Counted from the first letter of the stretch, positions 20,676 through 46,726 are shown. The stretch is DNA of 64,000 nt from Marsupella aquatica (GCA_973895155.1 OZ316897.1:14445375-14509374); one strand, 5' to 3'. Numbers and translations are program-made. The notes: generated by a model not told the origin, from the sequence alone.

Positions 20676-20845
20676 CCTCATGCTCCAGTGGAGCGGTAGT
20701 GTTTCTCGTTCAGCGGCTCCCTTCTCCAATGTTCGACTGAGCGACGACGATTCTCGTTCAGCAGCTCTCATCTCCAATCTTCGACTGAGCGACGACGATT
20801 CTTCTGTCACGTTTCGGTCGATTGAGGGGCGTAGACTCGATCACC

Positions 20846-22036
20846 ATGATGGCGGTTCGCAAGCCCGCGTCGCTTCTGCTGATGGCATTCGCCATCGCGA
20901 CGCTGGCCTACTTCTCGTGCCAGACAAGTGCTGTACGACATTCTCCACTAGGTAATTATGTGGGACACAGTCGGAATTGACACACCGGTGTTTGTGTCGA
21001 TACTACCGAAATAGTGAGACTTTGCTTGGATGAACATTGTCTGCGATTATTGGTGTCCGATCGACTCGGCGGAGACATATTGACCGTCGTAAGCTGCCGT
21101 TTCGTCGGGAACGAACGTCTCGCGACATGATCGGTTCGAACTCGTTTTTGTTCGAGGAGTTCTCGATCATAGTACTTGCATGCACGGCTCGTTGATCAAA
21201 GAGTGTACATGTGTTGGTTTGTTGTCACGGACATGTTGTTAGAAACGCTGTTCTGTTCGACTAAATTTGCGTCCATCGACTTTGACCTGATCTGGAGTTA
21301 TTGTCCATCATGGGGTAAGTCGATCCGTTCGCTTGTTGACTCGAGCGATGGTCCTTCTTCCTTATCTTTGATATCCGGTTGCATGCATGCACGCAGGGCC
21401 CCGTGGCCGGATGCGCGCAGGGACTTATCGGGTTCAGATACTTTCGAAGTCAGGGAGCAAGCATTTTGTGGAGAGCCTCGACGATTTGTCGTCTCCGAGG
21501 GTATCGGAAAATCTGCAGGTACGTGAAGAAGGTTTATTGTGGTCAGATTCAAACATTTTTATTGTGGTCCTCGGAGGCTTTCATTGTTGTCAGATGATCC
21601 GGAATGCTTGACTTCCGCCACGTTTGTTATCGAAATTGCGCAGGTGGGAGGGGATAGTGACTACGGTCCACCATCAGTAAACCCCCCAATCCATGTCGAC
21701 CCCCCGATTACTCCTATAACATTCGACAGTCACCAATTGGATACCAATCCCAATATCCACGAGGATTATGCTCCAGCGACAGGCCACCCTCCCATTGATT
21801 ATCATGACTACCCCCCGCCCCATGATTTCGTTTCGAATCACCAATTGGATACCAATCCCAATATCCACGAGGATTATGCTCCTGGAACAAGCCACCCTCC
21901 CATTGATTATCATGACTACCCCCCGCCCCATGATTTCGTTCCTCGGAAGACATGGAGCTCGGAGGCGAGTTTCATGCATGCCACTCTGCCGGCTCCGACG
22001 ATGATATACCACCCTGAGAACCTCTCCGGGCCCTGA
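20846..22036 (+). CDS. Secreted small-peptide precursor with multiple DY-initiated RGF/GLV/CLEL- and PSY-like motifs (206 aa, 3 exons)
   Basis: Exon 20846-20951 encodes a signal peptide (MMAVRKPASLLLMAFAIATLAYFSCQTSA-VRHSPL); exons 21397-21518 and 21644-22036 follow. GT-AG introns in phase 1 then phase 0 join into one open frame. Motifs: DYGPPSVNPPIHV, DYAPATGHPPIDY, DYAPGTSHPPIDY. Confidence 0.78.
21730..21940 (+). repeat. 108-bp (36-aa) in-frame tandem duplication inside the peptide precursor exon
   Basis: HQLDTNPNIHEDYAPxTxHPPIDYHDYPPPHDFV occurs twice, starting at 21730 and 21838. Confidence 0.9.
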
Positions 22037-22835: not shown

Positions 22836-25800
22836 GGATGGGGTAAGGTAAGAACCTTATCAATCTGCCTGTAGTGCAACTCCAGAACCTGATCTGAGAT
22901 CATGGTGGACGTGGGGGAAAGAGACGAGCTCTTGAATCGGCCAATCATCGCTATAGACGAATTTCTGCGTATATCTATGGACTTCTAATTCCTCCTTCAG
23001 GTCTATTCGAGTTTGCATGTAGTTGAGTCCTGTCCATGTACGTATATATCTCTCAACGTCCAAAATATCTCCTCAAACTCCAGCTTCTCAAACTCTCTCG
23101 AATACTAGCTTACTGAACGCAAACCAAGCTTTTGAACGTACCAGCAGACTTGTTGGCCAGCTCGGTGCGAGAGCGTTTCTGGTAATAATCAGGCTCATTC
23201 TTTGGTAAGGCGTGATGTTGCTTCAGAGTCAGTGGTGTACAAATCGTACTTATACAAAGTATGCATTTGATTACTTCACTTTCAAAAGGCTCGACCGTCT
23301 TTGAGAGGCTGCATGCGTTGGTGTCGATTACATTTCTACAGTAGTTACGAATGGCTCCTCCAATTCATGAAACGCGCCTTGAGAATAATATTTGAAGAGT
23401 TAAATTCTACTTCGTTCTGGGTTGTTGACATTGCACGTTTTATCATTTTTTATTCTTCTCGCTATGAACGGCACCGTAGGTTCCTAGTGTTGTTGCCCAT
23501 TCGTGGACTGACATTGATCCAACCGGAAAGGAGTATAGCTCTAGTCCACGTACGATGAATTTGAAACAAGTTCCGGAGTTCAATATCTACAAGAGCAACA
23601 CATAGACAGTAGCTGTGCCATCGATATCTTAGGTCGAACCCAATTACCGATCGTCCGGAACTAGCTTGTTTCTCTTGCCTACAGCAAAACTGCGTACTCA
23701 TGGAGCTAGGTATCTTAGCAGATATCTCGACGCAGTATACCTCCAAGCGCGTCTGTCAAATCAGTTGGATCGCGAATGCCAACTCATCCAGAAACGAGCT
23801 GACGGCAGACGAGTGCTGCAGCAGCTGTTCTCCGCCCCAAATTAACGGAAAAACAAAAACGTCAAATCATCATCAGTTCATTCGGTCCCCATCAATCAAG
23901 ACTTCCCATCCAACCTTGCGTGTGCAGCACCCACAGCATTGCATCAAGTACGTTTGGCGAATACTTAATTGTGTCCGGTCCTTATCTTCGATCTGGGACA
24001 GTAACTTCATGTCAACGATAGTCTTCGAATTGATTCGAGAATATGATTATATAATTGGCCTCCCTGGGCGGCCCTGAGGCGAACTTGACTTCACCAATGC
24101 AAAGCCAACAGGCAACAGGAAACATGTCCGACAGGCTGCAGGCAATGGAAAGGCCAAGTTGATGTCAAATCGCTGCAGGCAATGGAAAGGCCAAGTTGAT
24201 GTCAAATCGAACCACAAGCGTACAATTTATTCATCGCCATCACTCTTCACCGTTGTTTTTACGGTTGTTTTTATCTCTATCCACTGGGAGCTCCAAATTA
24301 TCTCCACATTATCGGGTGTAAGGAAATTCTATTGTAGCCAAACTCTATATATATTTTCATGCCCGTGGGGTGCACACAAGATGTCAAGGTGAGGCAAAAA
24401 TGTTTACATGTAACCTAACCCGTACCTAAACTGTAATCTAACCCTTACCTAAACTGTAATCTAACCCGTACCCCTCAAAAAAAATGTTTACATGAGAAAA
24501 GATGCATACAAGTAAAGAAATGCAAGTAAGGCAATTAAGAAAATGTTGAGGGAAGAAAATGTTTTTGAGGAAAAGAAATGCATATGAGTAAGATAATCTC
24601 TTAGTTAATAGTTAAGACACCATACGTGTGATTGTGATCACCTTGCACTAGGTGAGGGGAAGAATCTTTTTTCATTTGTCCTCCTCCTTTCTTTACTTTA
24701 TTCCTGGCCGCACCTCCCTTTTCCTTGTTTTGCTCTGACTTCCACCTTCCCCAATTGCTGCCTGCCTCCCCCTCCCTCCAACCTTTTCTTCCCTCCCAAT
24801 GCAATATTTCAAAAGGATAAAAAATTGGAGAAAAAATTGGAGAAAAACAAACCCAACCCAAAGGAAAAAAGGAAATTCTTCCTCTCTATAGCAAAAAGTA
24901 AAAACTTCTCCGTTTGTCTGCCCTCCCATAGTCCCTCTTGCCATGCTGCTGGAGGCTGCCACCATTGATGCTGCTGCTCGTTAGTCGTCGCTCTCACAGC
25001 TCGCTCTCGTTGATGTTGTCACTGCTGCCTCTCGATGCGTTCTCGATCGCTGCTGGAGGTGCTCTCGTGGATGCTGTTGCTGCTGCCTCTCGATGCACTC
25101 TCGATCGCTGCTGGAGCTCTCAATCGTTACTGTGACATTGAGCTGCAGGATGCGAGCTGCTCTCTCGATGCGCTCACGATGCTGTCGTTGCTGTGACATT
25201 GAGCTGCTGGATGCGAGTTGCTCGGTGATTCTCGCTGCTAGATCCGTTGTTCCAAACACCTTCGAATGTGAAAACTTTCTACAACTGATCTCTAAATGAG
25301 ATTCATCCAGTGGTTTTGCTCTCTTGGTGCTGTGCCCTCGTGGCTGTTTTGGCTCTTTTTCAGCTCATTTGTGCTTGGCTCTTTTTCAGCTGTGTGCTCA
25401 TATCGTCTTCTCGATGCTAGTGGTGCTTGGCGTCGGCTTGCTGGTTCATGGTTTCTGCTCATTTCCGCTCATTCCATTGGTTTGTTTTGTCATCAGTCCC
25501 CTGTGCAGAGTGGCTTCCCTTTACGGCTCGTTTTGGCTTTGGTTTTCTCTCGCTTGTGCTTATTTTTTAGGTTCGTTTTGTGCTCGTGTTTTGGGACCGG
25601 TTTCTAAGCCTGTTGGACTCTGTTGTTTGGCTGTGTGCTCGGCTTCAGCTGAGCAGTACTCTCGTGGCATTGTGGCTTGTTTGGCCTCGATCAGCTGCGC
25701 ACGGTTCGGGAGATCGATCCAGAAATTGTATTGGAGTTTCACAGGGTTCAAAGCTGTTGAGCCATCGAGGCAGTTCATGGATTTGAGGTTTGTGCCCATC

Positions 25801-26190
25801 CTCTGTGCTCTTTTGTAGGGTGCTCAGGGCTCTCTTTGGACCTTGATGTTGCTGGTGCTGCTCGGTCCTCTTCGGCCTCAGGTGGTTTCGTACAATTTGG
25901 CATCGGGGTGCTCAGGTTTGTGCTTGGTGCTGATCTGTGCTTGGTGCTGCTGCTCGGTGCTGTGTGCTTATTGGCTTCCAAATATCATCCAAAGTTATTG
26001 CTTCGCTGCATGGTTTTCAGTGGCTGTGCGGCTGCTGCTGTCAGTTTGGTGGATTGAGGTGTGAATCTGTTGGGTTTGGCGGCCAGGGAGGTAATAGGAG
26101 TCGTGATCGAATTGCGTGTGTTCTGAAGTCACATGTTGGCTGTGTCGAGACTAAAGTTTAAAGAAAGTGAAGTGAATGCGGGAGTGAATG

Positions 26191-28224: not shown

Positions 28225-30561
28225 TTATGGCCTGTACCTGTATTGTTGAAGGTTTTCACTATCTCGTTCCAAGAACTCTCTATGAACGAGAGATTCGACT
28301 CGATTCTTGATTGATTGTGGTGTTGGAAGAAACAGACCCTGAAAAAGATAAGTCACTGCTTTGAGCAAGCGTTGATGCTCCATTAATTTACTCTCCATGA
28401 TACGTAATATAGCAGCATCAATTTGAGAATTCCGGTTCTCCTCCACTCGGTGCTGTGTTTGCCCTCCCCAAGCAGGGCTTTGGTTCTGAGCAGTGCTTGT
28501 GTGGTTCTTCTCCACTTTGTACTTTTCTCGCGTGAAATTCTCATTGAAAATGAACCAGTCCCCTTCACCAATGTCTCTGCTCTTCGCGGGTTCCCTCCTC
28601 AAAATACTCGTTCCCGTGTCACACGCCAAAGATTTCAGATTCCTCTTCAGCTCAGGAGCGGCGATGCCCGTCTTTTGCAATATATCCTCATACGTCAGCC
28701 TGTCTGTTTCCTCGAATTGCCAAAGAATGCACATCGATAGTTGACAATGCGAGCTCGCATCTGTTTTCATTTCCGAGGTGGACCACCACTTCTGCATTTC
28801 CCATGTTGCTTTGGCACAACAGGCGACGATGTGGATGATTTTCCTTCTAGAAGCTGAGAACTTCTCAAGTTCGACCAACATCTCTGTAGGTAAGTTGCAC
28901 TTCGGGACCTGACAAATGGGCCATGCACGTGATGAAATAACCTGCACGTCATGCAAGGTTGTGTATATTAAATGAAACTGAAAGGTCTCTGGGCAGACTT
29001 AGACTAGTTTCTTACTATATAATGATCAGAATGCACGAAAACGTGACGGGGCTGATTGATTGAATAAAAATTCCATATGTTTCAACCAGGTATCTCCACT
29101 TAAATAACACCAAGATCGAGGAAAAACTAAAATCAAATTATGACTACAAATACCTACAAGATCCGCTGCACGAATTGAAAGTCGAATCTAGATACGAAAT
29201 TAAGCGTTGAGTTTGCGCGAAAGATCAGCAATCACATAATTACCCGCAGGGTGAGTTTGAGGCTGTCAAGTTCTGATTGTAGATATAGATCAACATTGAA
29301 AGTTTCCATGAGATCTTTCGACGTTTTTATATCCTCCAGCATTATCTCTAGCTTGTTAACACGTGGATCATCGCATGAAGCTTTTAGCTTGGAAATGAAT
29401 CTTCTCTCAGACTGCAGCAGCGACACATATCTCTCTGATAGAAGACGCTTCTCTCAAGTAATTTGAGTGATACCCCAGAAATAAGTCTTTGTTTTTCAGG
29501 TAACCGAAAAGCTCAATCACAGAATCCAGGAGGCTGCTAGTATCTCCATTTGATGCGCATTGCATTCCGAAATGATGGGAGGGTCCAAATGTTTGTAGAT
29601 TCAGCCATTGAGTCCCTTATAACATCTTTCCAACCAAGATCCCTCAATTCATAGCCAGTTACTTTGATCACGAGCTTAGGAGATCAAATTAACCCATCTT
29701 TCAAGCTAAACAGACATTTGACAAAGGTGATAGTCCTATCAGGAGCAAGAAGATGGTCCCTTCCAATCTCATTGGTATGAAACCTGGAAGAGAGACTTCC
29801 TAACATGCGCATATTTTTCAGATCATACGCACACCTGACTCCACCCTTCATTCCAAGTAGGTTCTGGAGATATTCATGAATCATCTCCTTGTTAACCATT
29901 TTGCAAGCCTTCCACTGAGTGTCAGGGAGGGTCTCTCAAGTACTCTGCGATTCTCATTGATTCTTCCTTGCTGTGGCTCTGTATCTTCTTGAGATTCGAG
30001 TCGATTCCAAGAACAATCAAGGATATCTGTGACTCAATATCGTGATAGCTGGCAGGAATTGCAAGATATCGTTCCTCAAAATCCTGGTCAACGAGTATCC
30101 CCCCAAACTGATCCTTCATAGGCTCCAACGACAGTATTTTGTCCAATATCAGCATCAGTATGTTGTCCATCATTAACATCCGCATACTGTCTACTATGAA
30201 CATTCGGTCCTGGATTTCCCCCTCTCCATCTCGTTCCTTGCTTACCAGAGAGAGCAGTCGAGACACGAAGCGGAACCTCATTGTGCCCTCCAAGATAATT
30301 TTCCTCCATAAAGAGACTCCATCTTCTTTCAGCGAGGAAACCCGCGGGCTATTGATCTCTCTGTAAATGAACAGCTGACAAATTAGATTTAGTGCTCGGT
30401 TAAATTTCTTCCATTCACCGAAAATGTTTCTCATGAGTGGTATGAAATCCAAAGACTCTACCCTTGTCAAAACAGCATAAATATATGCTTTCGTGGCAGC
30501 AATGACCATTGACATGAGGGCACTCTTATGTTCAGCATTTGCAGACATGAAGTAGACAAGC
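28225..30561 (-). pseudogene. Cullin (CUL3-like) pseudogene
   Basis: Cullin-like segments: LVSKERDGE.IQDR, DFEERYL, EESMRIAEYL, SERRFISKLKASC...KLEIMLEDIKTSKDLM, intron ~29243-28942, VISSRAWP..CNLP, LTYEDILQKTGI..ELKRNLKSLAC, VEENRNSQIDAAILRIM, IKNRVESLVHREFLERD..YRY. There are stops at ~29922 and ~29684 plus several frameshifts. Confidence 0.85.
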
Positions 30562-30854
30562 CTGCACAGTAGGTTCGAACCTAAGGATGAATCAAAGTAT
30601 GGAGGATGACGAAGCAAAAAGTGAACGAAAATATTGCAATTCCAGAATGAAAACGTTGTGAAGGTCAATTAAAGAACGAAAATCGCTGTATGTTTCTGTC
30701 GTTTTAGACAGATGTAAATACTTAAAATATTTCTTCTTTTTAACACAGTTACTTTAGGGGTTTTAGCTGGAAATAGTTAGGCGACGGGAAAGCAAAAGTC
30801 ATGAGATCGAGATGATAATATATATATATTTCTTATGGACCTTAGAAAGAAGAA

Positions 30855-35146: not shown

Positions 35147-36220
35147 GTGCACAGTTCACTATTCGCGCACAGGATGAGCTATCACCGGTCAACAGCGCTT
35201 GCAGTTGGATTGCTGTACCAAAGGCGTGGAAGTTCCAGTACTCCAAACGACCGTGCTCTATGTGTCTATCAAAACAATGTTTTTGATTCGGTGCCTCTAC
35301 ACCCTTCACTTCAGCGATCGAAGTGCGGAATCATCTCATTGAAAGGTAAAATTTATGTGTTAGGAAGTGAGGAAAACAGTGACACAAAGCTTGCCAGCCG
35401 GGAAGTACACTCTTTCGATCTGGTGGACAGAACGTGGACCAGATGTGCGAACATGCAAGGAAGGAGAATGAGTTTTGGTACTGGTGCCCTGGATGACAAG
35501 ATTTATGTGTTTGGAGGCTCCAACTACGGCGTACCTTTTCGTGTCTCTGAGGTTTATGATCCAGCTGCCAATGTCTGGTCCACAATAGCGGACATGATGG
35601 AGAGTAGAACAAATCACCAAGTTGCGGTACTGGGGAAATTTTTCATTGTGTATGGGGGGGTACTCTATCAGACGGATGTAGAGTCTGACGGAACTGTACG
35701 AAGTTCTGACACTCAGGCAAACTCAGACTGGGATGGTGCCTACTTGGATGTCTCTCCATCTGCCGTATTGATTTACGGTCCAGAGAGCAATCATTGGGTC
35801 AAATCTTATAATGCCGACGGTGTTAACAATAGCGTTTTCAAAGACAATGTCTTTGTGGTGAAGGGAAAATTTCATCGCTTTACAAGTACGGGTGATGGCA
35901 TTGAAAAATTCAATGTAAGTAGAAAATCATGGAGTTTGTTGCATGGCCTTGTGGCTTGGGATGATGGCGTGAATCATGATAACCTGAATGATCTACCTGA
36001 TAATCTGGATCTTGGACTTGGAGGTCGTCAGGCTGTAATGGTTGACGGAGAGCTCTTAACCGTGTGCCATCTCGGAAGTAACACAGTACCGGGAGCTGCT
36101 CGTCTTGTTCAAACCAATGGGTTTGGGCGTGGTCATGACATCCTCGTGTTGGAGCTGCTTAAGTCTTTCCGTGAGGAATTTGAAGAAGATTCGACTATTC
36201 TATTTCCTTTAGATTTGTGA
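35147..36220 (+). CDS. Kelch-repeat protein (F-box/kelch-type C-terminal region); no intact F-box seen
   Basis: GKIYVLG..FDLVDRTWTRCANMQGRRMSFGTGALDDKIYVFGG..EVYDPAANVWSTIADMMESRTNHQVAVLGKFFIVYGG. The first in-frame ATG is at 35174. Confidence 0.8.
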   Translation: MHSSLFAHRMSYHRSTALAVGLLYQRRGSSSTPNDRALCVYQNNVFDSVPLHPSLQRSKCGIISLKGKIYVLGSEENSDTKLASREVHSFDLVDRTWTRCANMQGRRMSFGTGALDDKIYVFGGSNYGVPFRVSEVYDPAANVWSTIADMMESRTNHQVAVLGKFFIVYGGVLYQTDVESDGTVRSSDTQANSDWDGAYLDVSPSAVLIYGPESNHWVKSYNADGVNNSVFKDNVFVVKGKFHRFTSTGDGIEKFNVSRKSWSLLHGLVAWDDGVNHDNLNDLPDNLDLGLGGRQAVMVDGELLTVCHLGSNTVPGAARLVQTNGFGRGHDILVLELLKSFREEFEEDSTILFPLDL

Positions 36221-43855: not shown

Positions 43856-46726
43856 CTATACCGTGTATGACTGCTGGATGTGATCCATATCCAAACCTTT
43901 CAACCTTACCACAGATTCTACGTGTCCCTTGAGAGTGTAATGCTCTCTCAACCTTGCAATTTCTGCCCGTCTCTGGGCCATTTGGGCGATCTCGGGAACA
44001 TCGCCGGAACTCGCTGGTCGGAACTCGCGTGTCGGTACATTATTTTTCTCGTTGTGCAGGCCGTGCAGAGTTCGCTGCGCATGTGCCCACTGGGCCTCCC
44101 GGTTCTCCTTTCCAAAGTTCGCCTCGGAAGTAAATGCAGTCTTCCTTGCGAGCATCAAGTCCCACGCACGCCCGCTCAAAACGTAGAAGATGGCGAACTT
44201 GATGAAATCCAGAGGAATGTATGTGATGATGCTGTACAGCCAGATGACCCCTGCCCAACCCCAGCCCACTCCTCTAATGGTAGCAAAGCCCCAAACAGCA
44301 TAGACAGCCACAAAGGTGGCCACGAGTTGGGCTATGCAGAAGGCAATCATCAGCAGCACGCCCGGCCGGTCCATGAACGAGAAGCCTCGCGAACGAGTCA
44401 CGAATATCAAAGCTTGGCTGATGATACTCACTTGCAAGTACACAGCGGCAGTGAGCTTGTCGTTTTGACCATTGATTGACTGCACGCCAAAGGTGTTCTT
44501 GAAAAAGTTGGTCTTGTCGGCTGCCCAGAAGAAAAGGACAGTCATCAAGGCCAAATAGGTGCCAATCACTACCCCGGTGGCAAAAATCTCATTCAGCTTC
44601 CAACTGTCAGGGAGAGGAGACGGAATCACTCTGTCCTTGGAGATGGTCATGATGGTACCATCATTCAGGATGGCAATGACCAGAACCATAAACGGTGAGA
44701 AGTCAAACTTCCAAATCAAAGCCAGGAGAAGGAAGCCCAGGACGATACGGACGGTGATAGACACCGCGTAGATGGTGTAGTTCTTCATCCTCTGGAAGAT
44801 GGCTCGACTGGTAAGCACGGCATGGATGATGACGCTGAGACCAGGCTCTGTCAGCACGATATCTGAAGCACCACGAGCTGCATCAGTTGCATCAGAGACA
44901 GCAATGCCAATGTCTGCTTTCTTCAAAGCTGGTGCATCGTTCACACCATCTCCCGTCATTCCGCAGATGTGCTTCTGACCTTGAAGTCGCTTGACAATTT
45001 CGTACTTGTGCTCAGGGAACACTCCTGCGAAACCGTCCGCCTTGAAGATTAGCTCATCGATGTCTAGCCCTGCTATGGATTCGTCCTTGCTCTTTCCAAG
45101 CAAAGATGCAGACGGATACATGTTCGATCCCATGCCGAGTCTTCGGCCAGTTTCTTTGGCAATAGCCAGCTGATCACCCGTGATCATCTTCACATTGACC
45201 CCCAGCTTGAGAGCCTCACGAATAGTTTCAGCACTGTCGTGACGGGGAGGGTCAAAGAGCGGTAACAATCCAAGAAACTCCCAAGGGCCCCCTTCACTGT
45301 CCTTGCTTTTCTCCGGCACTTGTTGTCTGGCAACAGCGAGCGATCGGAGCCCGCGCTCAGCGAATTTATCAATCACGCTGTGCACCCTGGCAGCAATTTC
45401 GGCGTTGTTGTGGGCCAGGTGGAGAATCTCCTCCGGAGCGCCTTTGCTAGCCCTGTGCCAGTTCCCTTCTTCATCGATGAAAGTAATGGCCGTGCGCTTG
45501 TCGACGGGATTGAAAGGCAGGAAGTGAACTTCCTGGATGCCTGCACGGGCTTCCTTAGGATCTCCCAACATGCCTACGATGGCGGTGTCAATGGCGTCCT
45601 GATTCTCCGTCCTCGCTGCTCTCGCTGCAGACAGCACGATGAAATCTCTATCCACACCTTTTGTAAAGACTTCAACGAGACTCTTGTCTACGGTCAACTT
45701 GTTCAGGGTCAGAGTACCGGTCTTGTCACTGCAGAGGACATCCATACCTGCCATCTCCTCTATAGCAGTCATTCGCTTCGTGATTGCACCCTGTTGGGAC
45801 AGCTTGTGGGACCCAATCGCCATGGTAACAGAGAGCACGGTGGGCATAGCAATCGGGATACCACCAATGAGCAAAACCAAAAGGTTGTTAATTCCATCAC
45901 GATACTTCCGTTTTTGGATGGGATACATGACAAGAATCTCTACTAGAAGGCCTAGCGCAATTGTGCAAATACAGAAACTTCCGATAGACGTCAGAACTTT
46001 TTGGAAATGCCCCACCGACTTGGTGCTGTCCACGAGATATGCAGCCTTGCCGAAGAAGGTGTGCACCCCTGTGGCAATGACCACGGCCTCGATTTCTCCC
46101 TGCTTGCAAGTCGATCCTGAAAACACCTCATCGCCTGGTTTCTTGGTGACGGGAAGCGACTCTCCGGTGAGGGACGACTGGTCGATTTTTAAGGGATCAC
46201 CTTCGAGAAGACGAGCATCGGCAGGGACGATGTCTCCCAGCTTGATACTGATAATGTCTCCCGGGACTAGAATCGAAGCGTCCTGCTCTCCCCACTTCCC
46301 ATCCCTCAACACCTTCGTCTTAGGGGCCAGGCGAGCCATCAGAGCTGCAGCGGCATTACCTGCGTTGTTCTCCTCAATAAAACTGATCGTCGAATTGATT
46401 ACCAACAGAGTGATGATTCCGATGAAATCTTGCCAATCAGGTGGCCTTCCCTGACCATTCGCAAGCGCAATTGCCATGACAGCGGCCGCCTCCATGACCC
46501 AAGACAACGGATTCCACATGAACCCCAGGAACTTCAAGATTTTACTCTCCTTTATTTCCTGGAGCTTGTTGGGGCCGAACACCTGCAATCGAGCCTCCCC
46601 TTCTTCCATGGACAGCCCTTCCCTCGTGCATCGAAGCTGCATGAAGACCTCCTCCACGGGTATGTGCTCCAGGTCGACGGACTCGTTCTGCAAGTCCTCG
46701 AACTTCATCTTGCCCTCCGCCGCCAT
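43856..46726 (-). CDS. AHA: Plasma-membrane H+-ATPase (P3A-type, AHA family, penultimate-Thr type), intronless, 956 aa
   Basis: Single ORF with [62 protein letters not shown] and ILNDGT, ending LKGLD...QQSYTV (14-3-3 binding motif). Confidence 0.98.

Follow-up and report, generated by a model that had tools for sequence, protein, structure and literature searches.

A candidate precursor of DY-type signalling peptides in Marsupella aquatica that combines RGF-like and PSY-like features

The peptide hormone set of liverworts is thought to be minimal, with one RGF, one or few PSY and one CIF, and it is because of this minimal set that liverworts are used to pair ligands with their receptors genetically. 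Conserved DY modules separated by variable linkers are the signature of RGF, PSY, CIF and PSK precursors (PMC8462819, PMC6698702). An Asp before the Tyr, often together with a further acidic residue, is the minimal context for TPST (PMC6698702, PMC8462819). TPST and receptors of the RGI and GSO type have been reported from Marchantia (PMC8462819, PMC8708909). A survey of 27 liverworts by Furumizu and Sawa recovered one RGF for each species, nearly the same across the set, with the motif DYAEPD[TV]HPP[ES]SN closing the precursor; the canonical RGF of Calypogeia fissa is the 1KP sequence RTMU-2183659, ending in DYAEPDVHPPSSN (PMC8329595). For PSY peptides the spacing D1-Y2-N8-H11-P13 is kept in 31 of the 32 surveyed members, and the OsPSY7 precursor holds four copies (PMC7913133). 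A moss PSY-like family (PSYL) described from Physcomitrium has shifted H and P positions and is bioactive (bioRxiv 10.1101/2024.05.13.593875), and PSYRs are present in mosses (bioRxiv 10.64898/2026.07.25.740709).

Here, we analysed a locus within a window of 64 kb, one continuous stretch of DNA from Marsupella aquatica. An earlier note on this DNA had proposed three exons that splice in phase into a secreted protein of 206 amino acids. Judged by its sequence, the locus is very likely a real protein-coding gene. The gene model has the following parts:

20846..20951 (+), exon 1, 106 nt, with the start codon and a signal-peptide-like N-terminus; ends in phase 1
20846-20932 (+), signal-peptide-like segment within exon 1, residues 1-29; predicted cleavage after TSA
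20952..21396 (+), intron 1, 445 nt, GT-AG, TAG/GTAATT...GCAG/G; the least certain junction of the model
21397..21518 (+), exon 2, 122 nt, variable pro-region; brings exon 3 into frame with exon 1
21519..21643 (+), intron 2, 125 nt, GT-AG, CAG/GTACGT...GCAG/G
21644..22036 (+), exon 3, 393 nt including TGA; all DY modules, the conserved tail and the stop codon

Direct translation of the joined exons with a local script gave 621 nt and 206 codons, with the sole stop at the end. Exon 1 translates to MMAVRKPASLLLMAFAIATLAYFSCQTSAVRHSPL with one base left over, exon 2 contributes 40 hydrophilic residues, and exon 3 adds 130 residues followed by the stop. Exons 1 and 2 together (106+122 = 228 nt) are in frame. 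The phase-1 end of exon 1 means that exon 3 can be read in frame only behind an exon of 3n+2 nucleotides, such as exon 2. Both introns are of the GT-AG type and their borders have a good consensus. The proposed three-exon model is borne out by the translation and by the intron borders, as well as by the colinearity with C. fissa proteins described below. The junction between exons 1 and 2 is ambiguous, as 20 GT-AG combinations leave the frame open (160-212 aa), and two forms that skip exon 2 do likewise. Among these alternative splice pairs, the one chosen in the earlier note conforms best to the consensus; none of the alternative forms loses the signal peptide or exon 3. The GC content is about 0.50 across the gene, against 0.31-0.44 in most of the flanking sequence. 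A codon-usage test was trained on the ATPase, Kelch and cullin open reading frames of the window; the log-odds were higher in the exons than in the introns and flanks, and the test did not single out the reading frame. Homology searches were run exon by exon. The exons were joined only for the checks of frame, length and composition and for the listing of splice pairs.

Several other features lie close to the gene. A 48-nt unit occurs twice in tandem at 20703-20798, with 92% identity between the copies, 48 nt upstream of the start codon in what is presumably the 5' UTR or promoter. From an ATG at 20680, also upstream, an out-of-frame ORF of 91 codons extends past the start codon of the gene. 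On the opposite strand, an ORF of 112 codons (21674-22012, -) overlaps exon 3. This antisense ORF is most likely not a gene, and it most likely stays open because the repeated Pro, His and Asp codons give no stop on the reverse strand.

Further away, an uninterrupted ORF of 956 codons (43856-46726, -) encodes a complete plasma-membrane H+-ATPase with E1-E2 ATPase, HAD hydrolase and Cation_ATPase_N domains. Its product shares 92% of its residues with a C. fissa protein and 83% with proteins of Marchantia and Riccia, so that the window belongs to a liverwort nearer to Calypogeia than to Marchantia, and a Marchantia origin was rejected. The ORF, apparently intronless, could be a retrogene. Two long ORFs with Cullin and Cullin-Nedd8 domains (28225-30668, -) are probably exons of one cullin gene. 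An ORF of 357 codons (35147-36220, +) encodes a Kelch-repeat beta-propeller (Kelch_1, Kelch_6, FKB95-like), possibly an F-box/Kelch protein. Between 25000 and 26000 the composition is strongly skewed (AT skew about -0.5, GC 0.51), and this stretch contains an ORF of 164 codons without a Pfam match (25324-25818).

The N-terminus of the predicted protein was evaluated by a heuristic reading of hydropathy. It has basic residues (R5/K6), a hydrophobic core of 16 residues with a maximum Kyte-Doolittle mean of 2.65 over 11 residues, and a site of small residues, TSA, at residue 29. By this reading the N-terminus is signal-peptide-like, as had been proposed, and the C. fissa proteins start similarly.

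Relatives were searched for with exon 3. A phmmer search among 1.84 billion (1.84e9) representative proteins returned a single match with an E value of 1.8e-12. This match, CAM6095317.1 (P0001), is an unnamed prediction of 184 aa from the leafy liverwort C. fissa, and a direct BLASTP comparison of exon 3 with it gave 2e-20. A profile search with both sequences added only a second C. fissa copy of 191 aa (P0002), encoded on a different chromosome-sized contig. A word-indexed protein search with exon 3 gave no match, no transcript-derived homologue was found in the protein library, and relatives were thus detected in one other species only, C. fissa. The gene had been called hidden. No Marsupella aquatica protein was found in the protein collection, where the neighbouring ATPase also lacks a self match, and in this respect the description holds; the C. 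fissa counterpart, however, is annotated. Within the paper library searched, we found none of six motif strings of the gene or of its C. fissa relative, including DYVPPHPNPPIH and NPPIHTDPP. The two C. fissa copies are 91% identical and lie on different chromosome-sized contigs, which would fit homeologues.

Both C. fissa proteins are colinear with the gene model from start to stop. They share with it the signal peptide, a variable pro-region, the QVG, a first module, a linker, a second module with HDYPPP and the NLSG tail. At the N-terminus 15 of 25 residues are identical to P0001, following the pattern MAVR..SLLL.AFA....YFS, so that both segments start with MAVR and end with YFS. Exon 2 gave a weak colinear match to residues 70-91 of P0001 (E 0.042, from a single comparison), and the pro-region of the C. 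fissa proteins is longer. The residues at the join of exons 2 and 3, Q/VG, correspond to a QVG ahead of module 1 in P0001 and to QVR in P0002. The stop is placed identically, after NLSGP here and after NLSGN in C. fissa.

The repeated elements of exon 3 are the following:

21659..21706 (+), module 1, DYGPPSVNPPIHVDPP; both RGF-like and PSY-like
21755..21829 (+), module 2, IHE-DYAPATGHPPIDYHDYPPPHDF; two conserved DY sites, D1Y2 and D15Y16
21863..21937 (+), module 3, DYAPGTSHPPIDYHDYPPPHDF; a recent duplicate of module 2
21950..22033 (+), conserved C-terminal tail, W.SEA..HATLP.PT......NLSG

The DY motifs start at 21659, 21764 and 21872, exactly where they had been reported, and the further DY noted after the second and third motif was present as an IDY and an HDY after each. 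No further match to DY-x(5-7)-PP was present when all six frames of the 64-kb window were translated. Modules 2 and 3 lie within a tandem direct repeat, 21730-21832 and 21838-21940, with a spacing of 108 nt, an identity of 96% and the frame preserved. Because of this duplication, the two modules represent one module that was copied recently and not independent ligands. The duplicate was found in neither C. fissa protein, both of which hold a single module 2. The idea of three ligands therefore fails: there are two module types, and the third motif is a very recent in-frame copy that is absent in C. fissa.

Conservation between the two genera is confined to short blocks. Module 1 shares 12 of 16 residues with the C. 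fissa sequence DYVPPHPNPPIHTDPP, and module 2 shares 13 of 19 over IH.DY...HDY, with PPP..F common to both. From the PPP..F of the last DY module through the tail, 19 of the 33 aligned residues are identical. The linker between the modules, on the other hand, retains 1 of 16 residues. In P0002, module 1 carries D in place of N as its eighth residue, and GFIF is inserted within HDYPP...PPP. Since the linker is saturated, the modules are under constraint, which argues for a functional gene. Conservation of the DY...PP motifs in homologues had been named beforehand as a test of the proposal, and the C. fissa modules show it. The idea of a multi-module precursor gains from this as well, as module 1, module 2 and the HDY site of module 2 are all conserved in C. 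fissa.

A locus that does not work as a gene in this genome, being unexpressed, a decaying copy or mis-modelled, is very improbable on this evidence. The ambiguous junction between exons 1 and 2, the weak codon statistics and the recent duplication of module 2 would all fit such a locus. Against it, the frame of 621 nt is intact, the duplication is in frame, the start, the stop and the second junction agree with the C. fissa proteins, and the modules are conserved between genera despite the saturated linker.

We also considered the overall composition of the protein, which includes 30 Pro, 15 His, 16 Asp and 10 Tyr in 206 aa and no Cys downstream of the signal peptide. An AF2 prediction, limited by a shallow alignment of three sequences, gave a mean pLDDT of 51.6, a pTM of 0.13 and no secondary structure, and this output fits a disordered pro-protein. 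The highest local pLDDT (62-71) was found in the C-terminal tail, still without secondary structure. Such a composition, together with the predicted disorder, would also suit a secreted Pro/His-rich protein that has no ligand role and acts intact, for example as a wall-associated, metal-binding or glycosylated structural protein. The conserved tail carries an NLS sequon that peptide-precursor models leave unexplained, and no processing sites were identified in the protein. In such a structural protein of the HRGP type, conservation would concern repeat composition, whereas here it lies in two blocks of 16-22 residues on either side of a linker with 1 identical residue in 16. Neither SPPPP nor AP/SP nor other HRGP repeat signatures are present, and the conserved Tyr residues of the modules all stand in a DY context. 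We consider a purely structural role rather unlikely.

The contrast between conserved modules and a free linker is instead the pattern typical of peptide precursors. In the modules, the conserved Tyr is always preceded by Asp and often by another acidic residue too (DSDY, EDY, HDY). Short conserved DY modules in an acidic context, set between freely diverging linkers, make up the signature of a sulfopeptide precursor.

Where the putative peptides would begin and end was approached by comparing the residues around position 13. The motifs had been described as 13-mers in which the terminal Asn13 is replaced. Asn13 is indeed absent everywhere and P9-P10 are kept, but the boundary of 13 residues was borrowed from RGF, and residue 13 itself is not conserved. 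In module 1 it is V in the Marsupella gene and T in C. fissa, and module 2 has Y or S there. The residues just past this position are invariant, with DPP after module 1 and HDYPPP..F after module 2. Because residue 13 varies while the following residues are conserved, the replaced Asn13 may result only from the end that was assigned to the peptide on paper, and RGF 13-mers that have lost their Asn13 are probably the wrong frame of reference. Conservation that runs past residue 13 instead delimits conserved units of about 16 and about 22 residues. As an alternative, module 1 could be cleaved after the conserved His12, giving a His-terminated 12-mer. In module 2 conservation extends to the second DY (HDY) but not to the IDY, and at most two predicted sulfation sites per module are therefore supported.

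The locus was then compared with the RGF/GLV/CLEL family. Common to both are a secreted precursor, the DY start, Pro9-Pro10, the PPIH of module 1 and a likely receptor class, LRR-XI. D1, Y2, P9 and P10 (criteria of PMC8329595) are present in all three Marsupella modules and in both C. fissa modules. None of the modules in the three proteins carries Asn13, the anchor for the receptor RxR motif, which in RGF has His, Asn or Ser before it. RGF precursors differ: their only domain sits at the extreme C-terminus and closes with Asn, as in MpRGF and the 1KP liverwort RGFs. Here, the modules are internal and of two types; they begin 125, 90 and 54 residues ahead of the stop and are followed by the conserved tail, so that there is no single C-terminal domain. 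In the Pfam search no family reached the threshold with any of the three proteins. GLV1-2 (PF21529, gathering cutoff 28.1 bits) was the only family touched, over a DY module, with sub-threshold scores of 16.6 bits for exon 3 (module 1), 20.3 for P0001 and 18.5 for P0002, and the final profile position, the Asn, was unaligned. In the ESM atlas, the feature neighbours of P0001 were RGF8 and RGF3 clusters (0.91 and 0.90, with 178 and 173 shared features), a result that we treat as a lead only; exon 3 as query gave no usable match there.

An RGF orthologue of liverworts was rejected as a candidate. C. fissa possesses both the canonical single-motif RGF and the homologue of the gene described here, and compared by eye the two precursors are unrelated. 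MpRGF (MpRGF1; Mapoly0060s0001 / Mp6g09180) also differs from the gene described here in its N-terminus, which is unrelated, and in the C-terminal position of its domain. Nothing like this gene was counted as RGF in the 27-liverwort survey (PMC8329595). The earlier note had allowed for an already described multi-motif RGF orthologue of liverworts; this is not the case, as the canonical liverwort RGF is a separate gene with one motif.

A highly divergent paralogue of the RGF/GLV/CLEL family, whose peptides, perhaps His-ended 12-mers, act via RGI receptors, is a different matter. Module 1 fits the RGF pattern ungapped over 12 of 13 positions (DY-x5-N-PPIH) and fits the literature query DYxxxxxKPPIHN (PMC8462819) at 6 of its 8 fixed positions. 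Picea RGFs carry NPPIHN, and RGF-like peptides that end in His exist in Selaginella (DYTPAAIHPPRSH). GLV1-2 as the sole Pfam match of all three proteins and the RGF clusters among the atlas neighbours point in the same direction. These resemblances are set against Pfam scores that all stay below the cutoff, the missing Asn13 throughout, the internal modules and the presence in liverworts, including C. fissa, of one nearly invariant canonical RGF whose unrelated precursor ends in DYAEPDVHPPSSN (PMC8329595). Such a divergent paralogue is therefore improbable in our assessment.

Resemblance to the PSY family is of a similar kind. Module 1 has seven residues in common with AtPSY1 (DYGDPSANPKHDP), namely D1, Y2, G3, P5, S6, N8 and P9 (PMC8462819 Table 1). 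Together with the fit to DY-x5-N-PPIH, this agrees with the proposal that motif 1 resembles PSY and RGF alike. PSY precursors (AtPSY1, PpPSY1, OsPSY7) and the bacterial mimic RaxX share with the locus the DY, Asn8-Pro9, a His and Asp-Pro-Pro in this order, a conserved block longer than 13 residues and the precedent of multi-copy precursors. As expected for a PSY precursor, a signal-peptide-like N-terminus is combined with conservation in the module (12/16) and not in the linker (1/16). The fixed spacing D1/Y2/N8/H11/P13 was not found. Module 1 has D1, Y2 and N8, but His12 and Pro15, and modules 2 and 3 have H8, His14 and Pro17. In comparison with PSY and RaxX, His and Pro are thus shifted by 1-4 residues, and Asn8 does not occur in every module.

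These observations bear on the possibility that the gene is a PSY or PSY-like member, with modules that correspond to PSY domains carrying extra residues between Asn8 and His and with peptides that are perceived by LRR-XI receptors of the PSYR type. The five defining residues occur in the right order and are followed by DPP as in PSY and RaxX, and module 2 of C. fissa carries N8 and H-D-x-P. Multi-copy precursors such as OsPSY7, bioactive moss PSY-like peptides with shifted H and P and the PSYRs of mosses would be in line with this possibility, as would the residues shared with AtPSY1. The canonical spacing is nevertheless broken, with His12 and Pro15 in module 1 and His14 and Pro17 in modules 2 and 3, and position 8 is H in modules 2 and 3 of Marsupella and D in module 1 of P0002. 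Pfam GLV1-2 and the ESM atlas, the profile and feature tools of a set that covered no PSY profile, favour RGF over PSY. Altogether, membership in the PSY family seems unlikely.

Two further groups were compared. Moss PSYL is likewise a bryophyte-restricted, PSY-like DY family with displaced His and Pro that was found outside existing annotation (bioRxiv 10.1101/2024.05.13.593875). Compared by description, PSYL differs in its motifs and its shorter precursors (~110 aa) and occurs in mosses and one liverwort. CIF and TWS1, the ligands of GSO1 and GSO2, resemble the locus in their DY start and in a conserved block of ~21 residues with P9-P10 and a later PP. In a direct reading against the CIF query DYxxxxPxPPLxxPxPF (PMC8462819), module 1 fits 5 of the 9 fixed positions and the C. 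fissa module 6 of 9; in the same reading there is no terminal Asn, and Pro7 and Pro14 are not both retained. In summary, the spacings seen here match no known DY family, and none of RGF, PSY and CIF has all of its defining features present in this gene.

We therefore favour, with moderate confidence, the reading that the gene encodes a precursor of predicted DY (tyrosine-sulfated) signalling peptides and belongs to a liverwort family of its own, which is RGF- and PSY-like but orthologous to neither. This reading draws on architecture and conservation; from these we infer secretion, sulfation, processing, the mature boundaries and the receptor. The product would enter the secretory pathway via its N-terminal signal peptide, sulfation of the DY tyrosines by TPST would take place in the Golgi, and prolines may be hydroxylated. 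Cleavage by subtilases would free a single peptide from module 1, and each copy of module 2 would yield either one peptide with possible double sulfation or two peptides. Their receptors would be LRR-XI kinases of the RGI/PSYR/GSO group. Against this reading, the conserved tail past the modules is unusual for precursors of the RGF type, and only one further species has a relative, which is itself an unnamed prediction.

A bolder version would see in the gene an undescribed dual-module, partly doubly sulfated DY family, with module 1 as a surviving intermediate between RGF and PSY. Lacking the C-terminal Asn/His anchor, its peptides would engage LRR-XI receptors by a novel mode or, as natural antagonists, would compete with the canonical RGF or PSY of liverworts. 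We give this version little credence. The new receptor specificity or antagonist activity that had been proposed for the peptides is likewise speculation.

The family as favoured here is known so far from the leafy liverwort C. fissa and this related genome only, and it falls into no known family. Reading a genome independently of its annotation can recover genes of this kind, and the gene described here remains a candidate. If the interpretation is true, a conserved additional DY precursor would add an unrecognised candidate ligand to the peptide hormone set of leafy liverworts. A gene that mixes RGF-like and PSY-like features in two module types would, moreover, bear on how the sulfated ligands of LRR-XI receptors diverged.
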